Source: Octopus bimaculoides (taxonomy: Eukaryota). From it: a DNA stretch of 32,845 bases. Shown here in pieces: positions 8,376 through 21,470 of this stretch (positions are counted from its first letter, which is position 1; the number at the start of each line of letters is the position of its first letter). Position numbers and translations under genes: made by a program. Location of the stretch: positions 46,088,114 through 46,120,958 of the forward strand of contig NC_068987.1 in assembly GCF_001194135.2 (NCBI RefSeq). Direction: 5' to 3'. The notes under the pieces are model-generated. The model had not been told where the DNA came from. It searched no databases and saw nothing but the letters and a program-made list of their open reading frames with translations.

Positions 8376-10887
8376 TAGAGTGGCCTTTAGCAATAGGTAA
8401 TTTTTCGAAAGTTATAATTTTGCCGCTCCCACCCCCTAATCCTGTTCCAAAAAACAAAATAATAGGGGTGTACAAAATTTCAGCTTAATCAGACAACTGG
8501 TAGGCGACCCTCAAATGCCTTGAAGTTGGAACATAGTATACACAATGATTAATTCTTTTCAAAAGCAGTATACTGTTCCCTTTCTCCACCGTTTTCTATT
8601 TTTCTTCTTAAAGAAAATTATGTGGACACATCCAGGCAACCCCAAAAGATGTTTAAAAACGTTCAGAATCAAATTTACCCATATCTGATATGAAAAATTC
8701 CTGAAATAGATGAAAAACTTAAGAAATATTAGGTTTTCTTAATAAAGCACACAACTCCTATAAGAGAAACGCATTTTTATTTACAACAATAATTTCTATA
8801 GAACTAAAAACATAATGTGAACACTGAACACTGAATATTAAACATATTTTTGCATAAGAGACGATTTAGTGGCAGTTGGATATGTTTTACAGTTTTCGGT
8901 AACGATCGGTTAAACAAATCGTTTCTCAGTTTCATCTTCTGTGAGAATGTTATTGTAATCCTGAATGAGTTTGATACCTCTTTCTGCAACATCATTCACA
9001 ACAACTGTCTTTTCAAGTTTTTCAAGTCCACTTTTGTAACTAAGATCATCCTTCCCCGTTGAAGGGTTTTTGTCGAGGAAATCGGTGCTGATAGAAAATC
9101 TCGTGAAGCAAGTTCTTGTACCAGGCGTTACAAAAGACGAAAACTCGATGTTTGTAAATGAAGAAAAGTCATTTTGGTGCAGTTGATTTTTTCTCTTCCT
9201 CTTCTTCACTTTTTTTGCTTCAAACATAACTTGAGCAATATTTGCCTTCATTTCTATTGGAACATTGTCATCAAATATAGATAGAGCCACAGTTTCGGGG
9301 GCTAAGTACCAGAGGTGAATGGAAAATTTTTTCGCAGCAGCCTTATTGATTCCTTGATCAATATTCTGATAATTTATCAGTTGACACATGAATAGGAAAT
9401 CATGATGAGGTGCTTTAATTACCTCTGATGACAGAAACCAGGCTCGAACATACACTTGAACAAGAAAAATACTTATTTTTCTTAAAGGGTTCTTCTCCCA
9501 GGAGATAACTGAAATTGATTTTGAAACAGGTATATCTTGAATGCGTAAATTGCTTTTGACATTCACCTAGCATGATTTACAGTTCCTGCTGTACGAAACG
9601 ATATCCCGTTCTTCGGAATGCCGCCAAGAAAGGTCATCATTAACTCCAACAATTCTCGGTAATCAATTCGCTGTTGTTTCTGTGTAGAAAGGTGGTATTC
9701 AAGAAATCCAAGAATGGTAGAGCGGACATTATCAGGCACTTCATTGCTACTAGTTATGTAAACCTTCTTGTTGAGTTTCGTACCGGTTTCTCTAAATCTT
9801 TTGAAAAACGTCATGTCTGGACCAGAAGTTGCACCCATCAGTGTCACAACAACTCCTAAAAACTAACTCAAAAATGTGATGACAGCAAGGGAAGTACAAC
9901 AGGTCGCGATTGAACAACTTTTCTAGATTTGTACTGGTGCTGTCGTATCACAGCATGATGCCTGAATTTTGTCAATTATACCCCACCTCTCCACTGCTTG
10001 GTAAACAGCCATGGCTTGCTGTTCTCCTGAAGATATTGGAATTTCAGGGACTCCCAACAATTTCTCCTTGCCTTGAAGAATTATTATTATTGCCAGTCTA
10101 TCAACCTTTTCAACGCCTGCGAGTGCTAGGAGCAGCTTTCCATCTCAGTGCAACGCTAATTCTTGACAGTCGTTTAGGTTAAATTTGTACTGTATTTCTG
10201 TGTCTCGCTTCTCTAAGGCATTGAAAATAAATATAGAAAGGACATAACATTATAAAAACGGAGAGGTTATAAACATGGTATTACAACTTTGTCAGGGCTA
10301 CCAACAAAACATGGGAAGATCTATATCGTAATGCACCACAACAAAATGAATGAGGGCTTACAAGTTATTACAAGTAAATTAACTTATATTTACAAACGTG
10401 GACAAATCATATTAGTTTACTGCTTATCACTAACATATATTTCTTGATATTTTATTTCTCAACACTACCATTAGGTGCAGTACAATTCCTTCAACGGACG
10501 AACGTAACTCACAACCTCACTCGCTCATGGCTGGCCGCCGACTGGATGACGGCGAAAAATAGGTGTTTGACCTATATCTGTGGTCTGTCCCCAGCTTTGC
10601 AAGTTGCTTTCCCCATTATATTTATTGTCACTTATACTTCTAATACCAAGAATAAGTCTGAACAAGTTTTTAATTTAAGAGAGAATTAAATAAGTGATAA
10701 AAAAATTTTTTATCTGAAAAAATGACTTTCCGGGCAAAAATTTCAAAATTTCATGGTCGCTGAGGTTCGCCTTGCAGTTGTTCGATTGAGCTAAAATTTT
10801 GCATAGATTGTTTTTTTTTGTTAATTAGAACAAAATAGTTGAGTGGGAGCTAAACTTTTAGAAAGTTGAAAAATAAGGGCCACTCTA
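8376..10887 (-). mobile_element. hAT-superfamily DNA transposon (hATm-like), both ends present, 2512 bp
   Basis: TIR TAGAGTGGCC(T/C)TTA 13/14; 8-bp TSD GTGTGCAT (8368-8375) / GTGTGCTT (10888-10895); imperfect subterminal similarity; internal transposase remnant. Confidence 0.9.
8910..10170 (-). pseudogene. Decayed DDE transposase of the hATm-like element
   Basis: Motifs in order: LALH*DGKLL...VDRLAI...LLGVP...CCDTTA, LLYFPCCHHIFEL, QRIDYRELLEL...HAR, HLWYL, VVNDVAERGIKLIQDYN; stop at 10145-10147, deletion after DTTA, frameshifts. Confidence 0.88.
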
Positions 10888-11177: not shown

Positions 11178-11222
11178 TGTCCGGAAATCTTTCGTCACAC
11201 ACCTGTAACCTCTTCAGCGACA
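11178..11222 (-). ncRNA. Minimal type I hammerhead ribozyme (Penelope-type)
   Basis: TGTCG-CTGAAGA-G-GTTACA-ggtg-TGTGAC-GAAA-GATT-TC-CGGACA; core intact, 6-bp stem II with G10.1-C11.1. Confidence 0.75.
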
Positions 11223-19491: not shown

Positions 19492-19679
19492 AATTCATAT
19501 ATTTGTTTTCTTGTGATTTGCTTTGCCTTTACTTCGCATTGTTGTGGCTTTACTCACGATCCTTTATACAATATATTCTGCACAATGCTCCACAATAATT
19601 ATTCCATTATAAAGTGTGTGTGTGTGTAGCAATAATAAATCTCTGAACGAGATGTTCCCATTTCCAACCTGACGTGATA

Positions 19680-19724
19680 CACACGGACCCGAGTTTCTGG
19701 ATATTGCCCCGTCATCAGCGCATG
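19680..19724 (-). ncRNA. Type I hammerhead ribozyme, copy 1
   Basis: CATGCG-CTGATGA-CGGG-gcaata-TCCA-GAAAC-TCGG-GTC-CGTGTG; 6-bp stem I, GUC triplet, C.A mismatch at the base of stem II. Confidence 0.8.
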
Positions 19725-20034
19725 ACACCCACCGGCTGGTGATGGGAGACGATTTCTCAATGCAAATATATATACTTTTTCCAGAGACGAAAAGTCACTG
19801 ACCTCGAAAAAGGAGAAACAAGCAATAATAAATATGAGCGAGATGTAAACAGTAGCAGCACAACATCGTGGGGTACATTTACCACCTAAATATGGCTGAC
19901 CATAAATGGACGATGCTACTGTAGTTTATAGCCCCAGGAAGACATCTCTTCCAGCTGGTTATTGACACACTGTCTGTGCCCTATAGGTATTTGCAAAGGG
20001 AAACCATCGTTCCCATCTCTAGCCTGATGTGATA

Positions 20035-20079
20035 CACACAGACCCGAGTTTCTATGTATTGACCCGTCATCAGCGCGTG
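20035..20079 (-). ncRNA. Type I hammerhead ribozyme, copy 2 (stem II decayed)
   Basis: CACGCG-CTGATGA-CGGG-tcaata-CATA-GAAAC-TCGG-GTC-TGTGTG. Confidence 0.7.
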
Positions 20080-20184
20080 ACAACCATCGGCTAGTGATGG
20101 GAGACGATTTCTCAATGCAAATATATATACTTTTTCCAGTGACGAAAAGTTACTGATCTCGAAAAAGGAGAAACATAATATATA

Positions 20185-20863
20185 ATGGGTCATCCTATAA
20201 ATAATGAGGTTTTCTCAATTGCATGAACTAAAAGTCGGGGGTGGGGACGGGATAAACTATCTGCATCAACTTGTTATGAAAGCAGTTAATAAAGTGTGAG
20301 GAATATTAATGCAGTATATGGAGATCGGACAATAAGTGTAAGCCAGTGTCAACGGTGGTTCCAGAAATTCTGAACCGGAATTTACAGCCTAGAGGACGAT
20401 CCTCGTCCTGGAAGATCTGTAGAGCACGACGAGGATGTCCTGCAAACCCTGGTGGAATCCTATCGTAACTGTTGAAGAACTCGCAGAGAAGCTTGGATTT
20501 GGTCATTCAACTAGTCAGTCAAGTCCGCGCTAGAAGAAAAACGACCATCTCTGGTTTCAATTCGAGAGGTATTCTTCCATCAGCATAATGCTCAGCCACA
20601 TTCCAAAGGCTGAAGCAGTTTGAATGGGAAACAATACTCCACCCACCATATTCGCCGGATATTGCCACGTCTGATTATCAGTTATTCTGCATTCTTCAAA
20701 ATCATTTGGACGGAAAAAATATGAATACTGTAGACGAGGTCAGAACAGTATCGGAGGAGTATTTTTCACCACGGACAAGTGAATTTTAGAAGAACGGTCT
20801 TGCAAGTCTACCAGGAACGTTTTTATCTTAATTTCGAAAAATAAAATATTTAAGGGATGACCC
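20185..20863 (+). mobile_element. mariner element, internally deleted
   Basis: TIRs GGGTCATCC...TAAATA at 20187 and inverted, ending at 20863; peptides VYGDRTISVSQCQRWFQKF, LEDDPRPGR, TVEELAEKLGFGHST, HQHNAQPH, HPPYSPDIATSDYQLF. Confidence 0.93.
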
Positions 20864-21030
20864 NNNNNNNNNNNNNNNNNNNNNNNNNNNNNNNNNNNNN
20901 NNNNNNNNNNNNNNNNNNNNNNNNNNNNNNNNNNNNNNNNNNNNNNNNNNNNNNNNNNNNNNNNNNNNNNNNNNNNNNNNNNNNNNNNNNNNNNNNNNNN
21001 NNNNNNNNNNNNNNNNNNNNNNNNNNNNNN

Positions 21031-21061
<31 letters not shown>

Positions 21062-21063
<2 letters not shown>

Positions 21064-21470
21064 GTGGGTGTGTGATTAAAGAAGTTTATTTCCTAACTTC
21101 ATGGCACCATGAGTGTCTTATACTCTTGAGACCGACGAAAGCCTTGTGAGTGGGTTTGGCAGGCAGAAACTGAAATAAACTTATTGTATACTTATATGTA
21201 TATATATTGGTACATATGAGTGAGTGTATGTGTTAGTGTGTTAACATTGTGTGATAGTTGTGAACAAGCATAGCCAACATACTAGCAGCTTATCTTCGTT
21301 TCCAATCTGCTGCAGGAACATGTTTGGTTATAGGGAGATTTTACCTTACTTGGAAAAAAGTGAGCATTGGCAACAGGAAGGGCATCCAACACCTGTAGAA
21401 AATCTGCCTCAACAAATTCTGTCTAAGCTACCATAGCATAGAAAAGTTAAATTGACGACAAAGACAATGA
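21062..21470 (+). mobile_element. Diverged SINE family A with type-1 tail
   Basis: Family A head followed by CAGGAAGGGCATCCAACACCTGTAGAAA. Confidence 0.75.

Follow-up and report, generated by a model that had tools for sequence, protein, structure and literature searches.

Two hammerhead-like motifs in a short repeat of Octopus bimaculoides: a possible fossil of the Penelope/retrozyme lineage

What is the short repeat that carries two hammerhead-like motifs on the minus strand of a 32,845-nt stretch of the Octopus bimaculoides genome (contig NC_068987.1; the whole stretch is called the window below)? A first-pass annotation of the window had read it as a retrozyme, a non-coding tandem repeat whose hammerhead ribozymes (HHRs) would release an RNA of about one unit. 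We consider it reasonably probable, with a clear measure of doubt, that this is the fossil of an inserted element of the Penelope/retrozyme lineage, short, non-coding and hammerhead-bearing, which is present as two units and has ribozymes that lack helix II.

The motif has the same layout in both copies. On the minus strand, each copy consists of the 5' strand of stem I, CUGAUGA, 14 nt, GAAA, CUCGGGUC / CUCGGGU, C, and the 3' strand of stem I.

19680 to 19724, minus strand: hammerhead-like motif, copy 1; stem I 5' strand 19724-19719, CUGAUGA 19718-19712, helix II region 19711-19698, GAAA 19697-19694, helix III 19694-19687, C17 19686, stem I 3' strand 19685-19680.
20035 to 20079, minus strand: hammerhead-like motif, copy 2; stem I 5' strand 20079-20074, CUGAUGA 20073-20067, helix II region 20066-20053, GAAA 20052-20049, helix III (ACUCGGGU) 20049-20042, C17 20041, stem I 3' strand 20040-20035.

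The CUGAUGA...GAAA motif with a 6-bp stem I, claimed earlier for each copy, was thus present, with C17 at 19686 and 20041. The conserved core (C3, U4, G5, A6, N7, G8, A9; G12, A13, A14; A15.1-U16.1; H17) was complete and identical in the two copies, and all 11 conserved core positions and the GUC triplet were found in each. The open helix I of each copy had 6 bp (CAUGCG/CGUGUG and CACGCG/UGUGUG) and was prolonged by a rod of ~45 bp. Helix III, ACUCGGGU, was self-complementary with G-U pairs and of the dimer type, as had been proposed. Its predicted intermolecular 8-bp duplex had an energy of -10.3 kcal/mol, and no hairpin of helix III was predicted in the monomer; the helix has the pair C15.2-G16.2 and a UCGG loop inside the palindrome. 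The sequence supports the prediction of a hammerhead with type I architecture whose palindromic helix III is of the dimer type.

The differences between the two stems I had been taken as a sign of maintained pairing. Pairing was indeed kept, and the meaning of these differences as selection did not hold. Both were one-sided C-to-U changes at CpG (CACG to CAUG; CCG to CUG), and since C-to-U in a C-G pair gives a U.G wobble automatically, preserved pairing in stem I is what neutral decay is expected to leave. Covariation was therefore rejected for both CpG transitions. The core boxes, helix III and the cleavage site showed 0/19 differences between the copies, which was not significant with ~1.9 expected.

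An accidental origin of the motif is very unlikely. A type I HHR descriptor fitted only these two sites in the window, and a relaxed descriptor that allowed any helix II gave 0.023 matches per window in Markov simulations. The core with an 8-nt palindromic helix III occurred at 0.27 per Mb of single strand in 320 Mb of composition-matched random sequence, and the same pattern with a stem I of at least 6 bp had 0 occurrences there. Among metagenome contigs, the pattern CTGATGA-N10-20-GAAACTCGGGTC gave 56 matches, 55 of which were chance matches with a stem I of at most 4 bp and no helix II. The remaining one was a real HHR, on contig Ga0126336_10004877 (6927-6969, minus strand; called L002 here). 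L002 is a solo minimal type I HHR of environmental origin that does not lie in a repeat, with stem I GAGCAA/UUGCUU (6 bp), helix II GGUUC/GAACC (5 bp) including G10.1-C11.1, and helix III ACUCGGGU. It has the same CUGAUGA and GAAACUCGGGUC, the same helix III and the same length of stem I as the octopus motifs, and differs from them in its clean 5-bp helix II and its weak Rfam HH9 report; outside the motif it showed no similarity to the locus. Because L002 carries the identical helix III together with a proper helix II, this variant of helix III belongs to real ribozymes. The two copies in the window are one evolutionary event and not independent observations. A third CUGANGA-N-GAAA match, at 11190-11217 on the minus strand (CTGAAGAGGTTACAGGTGTGTGACGAAA), was rejected as it was at chance level (0.9 expected per window) and failed the filter for stem I and helix III.

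The repeat around the motifs was then resolved by alignment. The 167-bp block reported to recur at a 355-bp offset was confirmed: 19654-19820 recurs at 20009-20175, at an offset of exactly 355 nt, with 151/167 positions identical (90%) and zero indels. The pairwise divergence of the block copies was 9.6%, and 12 of the 16 differences were transitions. The locus was divided into the following parts.

19821 to 20175, minus strand: unit L, the full unit, 355 nt, blocks A', B and X' (from end-to-end alignment with unit S and from repeat detection).
19628 to 19820, minus strand: unit S, 193 nt, blocks A and X (from end-to-end alignment).
19845 to 20008, minus strand: block B, 164 nt, kept in unit L and deleted from unit S, with AC microhomology at the edges of the deletion.

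On the minus strand, both units start with TGTTTCTCCTTTTTCGAG and finish with ATTTATTATTGCT, and their first 18 nt and last 13 nt are common to both. Unit L, read from 20175 to 19821, has the termini 5' TGTTTCTCC... and 3' ...TTATTGCT, and its GC content is 44.5%. The junction of the two units is seamless, block X' stopping at 19821 and block A starting at 19820 with neither gap nor overlap. A random slice of a long array is disfavored because the end of unit L abuts the start of unit S exactly, which is rare for truncation. Tandem Repeats Finder detected no tandem array, and there are two units only.

Block X (AGCAATAATAAAT...CGAGATGT) flanks copy 1 on both sides (19628-19655 and 19821-19846) with ~85% identity. 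The first-pass annotation had noticed this and had suggested a permuted junction. The duplicated block stood, and the permuted junction gave way to two units with identical ends, one of which is internally deleted by 164 nt. For the same reason we rejected a reading of the locus as 1.5 units of a permuted array, as the alignment gave exactly two units with shared ends.

Folding of the minus-strand RNA tied block B to the hammerhead. The motif of unit L caps a long hairpin.

19975 to 20140, minus strand: hammerhead-capped hairpin of ~165 nt, minimum free energy (MFE) -63.1 kcal/mol; its arms, ~20085-20129 and 19982-20029, prolong stem I.

The duplex of the two arms had -49.7 kcal/mol against a null of -17.8 +/- 3.8 (0/500), and the inverted match was also seen by blastn. 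The first ~34 nt of block B form the lower stem of this hairpin, pairing with the distal arm of A' at -22.5 kcal/mol. With a null of -9.1 +/- 2.5, this pairing was matched by 0/2000 shuffles and by 1/3000 genomic 34-mers from the window. Block X of unit S paired at chance level, 465/2000 shuffles being equally good. A later insertion of block B into an (A-X)2 dimer was rejected, as specific pairing with the distal arm of A' was seen for the start of B and not for X. Unit S differs from unit L by one internal 164-nt deletion, and block B belongs to the original unit; in the predicted fold, blocks A and B form one integrated structure. The cut-to-cut 355-nt RNA was also more stable than its shuffles, with z = -2.68 as a linear molecule and, as a circle, an MFE of -107.4 kcal/mol with z = -2.85.

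We compared the ends of the units with the cleavage site. The ends lie 135 nt upstream of the cut site and, downstream of it, at 57 nt in unit S or 220 nt in unit L. For this particular insertion, fixed ends that lie off the cut site would favor a linear template whose ends are defined, in the manner of Penelope, over a circle cut by the ribozyme. On the hammerhead strand, a (CA)7 run directly adjoins the element at its 3' end. The flanks contain a candidate target-site duplication (TSD) and a mariner-like element.

19608 to 19627, plus strand: left flank, TATAAAGTGTGTGTGTG and (GT)n, the microsatellite that adjoins the element at its 3' end (hammerhead strand); candidate TSD copy 1.
20176 to 20186: TA-rich spacer, 11 nt, which separates the mariner from the 5' end of the element.
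20187 to 20863, plus strand: mariner-like element, ~677 bp, internally deleted; Pfam HTH_48, E = 4.8e-9.
21058 to 21074, plus strand: candidate TSD copy 2, TATAATGTGGGTGTGTG, 15/17 identical to copy 1, past the spacer, the mariner, the assembly gap and an (AT)n run.

The 17-mer TATAAAGTGTGTGTGTG had only one other match with at most two mismatches in the window, at 21058-21074, despite the presence of 43 dinucleotide runs. The mariner, which had been described as abutting copy 2, is 11 nt away from the element. Its terminal inverted repeats of 34 nt (20187-20220 and 20830-20863) are 74% complementary. It sits in the TA-rich flank, outside the repeat, and is directly followed by an assembly gap of 167 N (20864-21030). 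The spacer probably belongs to the (TA)n tract that resumes at 21031-21057. On the other side, ~135 nt from the 3' end of the element, we found a 66-nt inverted repeat (19207-19272/19426-19491; 89% complementary, with a 153-nt spacer) that resembles a miniature inverted-repeat transposable element (MITE) or a foldback element.

The element was non-coding in our searches, in agreement with the view that the monomer has no credible coding capacity. Its open reading frames (ORFs) were at most 70 aa and had no Pfam match, none of the six frames gave a homologue, and the 70-aa ORF through the repeat and the six-frame concatenation had no match in a set of 5.8 billion proteins. ARAGORN found no tRNA-like head of a short interspersed element (SINE), and no terminal inverted repeats were found at the ends of the element.

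The unit size of 355 nt, the GC content, the self-pairing and the lack of coding capacity match published traits of metazoan retrozymes. Repeats of non-LTR (long terminal repeat) retrozymes are 350-390 bp in Mytilus and 330/350 nt in axolotl (Cervera & de la Pena 2020, PMC7229834). The locus resembles these retrozymes (PMC7229834) in having a type I HHR in a short non-coding head-to-tail repeat (150-450 bp), a low GC content (44.5%, against a criterion of below 45-50%), a highly self-paired RNA, a short palindromic helix III that implies dimeric cleavage as in amphibian repeats, and size variants arising from indels. It differs from them in that it has two units only, with neither an array nor other copies seen within the window, in that its helix II is degenerate and lacks G10.1-C11.1, and in that its unit ends are fixed and lie off the cut site. 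Their TSDs, when present, are longer than 4 bp; the candidate here is a 17-mer with 15/17 identity, of low complexity, and with the mariner and the assembly gap between its copies. The (CA)n and (TA)n flanks and the candidate TSD fit the insertion bias for microsatellites and the partial head-to-tail tandems that are known from Penelope-like elements (PLEs) (PMC8557442, PMC11167929), and octopus genomes contain Penelope families (PMC13282606). We found no description of a cephalopod retrozyme in the literature searched. As a whole, the interpretation given by the first-pass annotation kept the type I architecture, the dimer-type helix III and the non-coding repeat of retrozyme size, and lost the argument from the stem I differences and the permuted junction.

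What is shown here is anatomy, and a life cycle can be proposed for the element from the literature on PLEs and on the retrozymes of mussel, coral and axolotl (PMC7229834). In the fold of a multimeric minus-strand transcript, the palindromic helix III of one hammerhead would pair with that of its neighbor, and each ribozyme would then cut after GUC to give a 355-nt product. A host RNA ligase could circularize this product. A Penelope-type reverse transcriptase (RT) and endonuclease, acting in trans, might copy the RNA into microsatellite-rich targets and so produce head-to-tail copies.

Several results weigh against this reading, the most serious of which is the state of helix II. The C.A at the base of stem II, positions 10.1 and 11.1, was confirmed in both copies, and contiguous pairing from the core is zero. 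The accompanying claim that it is one transition from C-G understated the damage, since helix II was worse than that: the energy of its hairpin was -1.9 kcal/mol in copy 1 and 0 kcal/mol in copy 2, and -4.9 kcal/mol in the control L002. A closed helix II of at least ~4 bp starting with G10.1-C11.1 was found in neither copy. Copy 1 can make three pairs at most, and a stable hairpin is absent from copy 2. Treating the C after A9 as a bulge gives copy 1 the pairs G-C, G-C and G-U, with an unpaired A then preceding G12, and copy 2 stays poor. Helix II was also the most diverged segment, with 4/14 positions differing between copies vs 12/153 elsewhere (Fisher p = 0.03).

The search with Rfam hammerhead models, suggested earlier as a check for type I HHRs, failed, giving no match at the gathering score and none even at E <= 10 on 801 nt. 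Under the same conditions, L002 was reported by Hammerhead_HH9 with 18.5 bits and E = 0.11, where the gathering score is 52. The Rfam models are thus insensitive to the minimal class of HHRs and the negative result counts weakly, and still the copies in the window score below a real HHR. Standard Rfam annotation likewise misses the class of L002 itself (18.5 bits vs 52).

Further points on the same side come from the comparison of the copies, the folding and the copy number. No compensatory changes were found anywhere in the motif between the two copies compared. The long hairpin supplies stem I by itself, and stem I is therefore not independent evidence. The plus strand also folded better than its shuffles (z = -4.4), so that folding does not identify the transcribed strand. 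The candidate 17-nt TSD is of low complexity and is interrupted by the mariner and the assembly gap. No further copies were found elsewhere in the 32.8-kb window, and exact-pattern scans for sister copies found none in metagenome contigs, in viral contigs (four patterns) or in prokaryotic genome contigs (two patterns). With two known copies in all, the family is putative.

The earlier remark that the locus may be decayed was well founded, as helix II is degenerate in both copies and the units are ~10% apart. On the clock for octopus transposable elements, a Jukes-Cantor distance of 0.09 corresponds to about 25 My (PMC13282606). By our own estimate on this clock, roughly 10-15 My would have passed since the copies were identical, given their divergence of 9.6%. 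Most likely we are dealing with an old copy without catalytic activity, which probably no longer cleaves itself.

An alternative with a smaller yet appreciable chance is that an autonomous PLE left this locus as a partial tandem, much shortened by truncation or internal deletion and made of pseudo-LTR (pLTR) and tail pieces, so that it would not represent a separate, non-autonomous family of retrozymes. The hammerheads of PLE pLTRs share with the locus the minimal palindromic helix III of dimer type (PMC4209133; Craig et al. 2021, PMC8557442; Frangieh et al. 2024, PMC11167929), and possibly also an extra nucleotide after A9, which is typical of these minimal HHRs (Cervera & de la Pena 2014, PMC4209133) and would be the C here. 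PLEs insert head to tail at microsatellite targets, their 3' ends are set by internal initiation of RT and not by ribozyme cleavage, and their endonuclease recognizes the terminal tail of the element itself (PMC8557442, PMC11167929). The locus is similar in its head-to-tail order, its microsatellite target and its defined unit ends unrelated to the cut site, and the 26-28-nt terminal block X recalls the 30-40-bp tail of PLEs. A 2026 preprint also argues that animal retrozymes derive from pLTRs (10.64898/2026.07.22.740005).

On the other side, the spacing of the hammerheads leaves no room for an ORF, and these copies, 355 nt apart, are not direct repeats that flank an RT/GIY-YIG ORF. No Pfam signal of RT or GIY-YIG was found in open segments of at least 60 aa within ~3 kb on either side, neither between nor near the repeats, and the sole RT in the window is of the LINE (long interspersed element) type, ~12 kb from the element. 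The repeat thus did not prove to be the terminal repeat of a long coding Penelope element, an outcome that the first-pass annotation had considered. The short helix II and long stem I are moreover the opposite of the published pattern of minimal HHRs in PLEs, with a helix II of at most 3 bp vs 6-8 bp and a stem I of 6 bp with its ~45-bp extension vs 4-5 bp. Judged by its sequence, the element has the helix II of neither retrozymes nor Penelope minimal HHRs.

It is unlikely that the motif is a chance look-alike of a hammerhead that caps the hairpin of some unrelated short repeat, such as a SINE, a MITE or a local duplication, and never was a ribozyme. Such an origin would account for the failure of helix II to form and for the lack of an Rfam match, the hairpin would give stem I for free, ~0.27 matches of core and palindrome per Mb of strand are expected genome-wide, and one independent occurrence is known. 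These points have to be set against the combination of 7 + 4 core bases, spacing, GUC and a perfect 8-nt palindrome placed exactly at the apex and in register with stem I. The random sequence above had 0 matches with a stem I of at least 6 bp, and 0/55 chance matches in the metagenomes had one of at least 5 bp. The size, GC content, non-coding nature and tandem order agree with known HHR repeats, and the element has neither a tRNA-like head nor terminal inverted repeats.

Least credible is an active retrozyme, at this locus or in its family, that tolerates a C.A closing pair and a 3-bp helix II and cleaves only as a dimer to give a 355-nt circular RNA: the lack of differences in the core, helix III and the cleavage site (0/19, vs ~10% elsewhere), the G-C, G-C and G-U pairs kept in copy 1 and the low in vitro activity of PLE minimal HHRs even when well formed (PMC4209133) speak for it, and against it stand the insignificance of that count (~1.9 expected), the absence of a stable helix II in copy 2 when release of a monomer needs both cuts, the high conservation of G10.1-C11.1 in natural hammerheads (PMC4209133), and the 10% divergence with CpG decay, which amounts to neutral ageing. 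We hold it similarly improbable that there is a live cephalopod family of retrozymes with a C.A or bulged base of helix II, three helix II pairs, dimer-only cleavage and abundant circles of ~355 nt, of which this locus would be a slightly aged member.

If a family to which the fossil insertion belongs exists, it would extend hammerhead-bearing non-autonomous retroelements, that is retrozymes and Penelope derivatives, to cephalopods, and would provide a 355-nt query for ribozyme-derived circular RNAs in octopus transcriptomes. The fixed ends off the cut site bear modestly on how animal retrozymes are copied, from circles made by the ribozyme or from linear templates with internal initiation in the Penelope style. 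As one decayed locus, it is a further example and leaves the concepts as they are, and type I hammerheads have already been annotated in a cephalopod genome, with 235 Hammerhead_1 matches in the giant squid (PMC6962438).

The window as a whole is a gapped, microsatellite-rich scaffold with 36-40% GC. The LINE-type RT is a fragment at 31714-32797 on the minus strand (RVT_1, E = 5.7e-21), and its best named relative was an Octopus 'jockey-like' protein with 65% identity. The peptide KLAMKCRQLTGWILRTFRT of this fragment is duplicated across a gap of 10 N, which suggests an assembly artefact. At 8910-9847 on the minus strand two adjacent ORFs (218 aa and 94 aa) have a composition like that of ordinary proteins and no Pfam match at E <= 0.01; they may be a decayed transposase or a fragment of a domesticated gene. 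At 26509-27231, a simple repeat of ~700 bp, A/T-rich and with a 3-nt period, creates artificial ORFs of up to 240 aa (poly-I, poly-N/D and poly-H/Y) in several frames.

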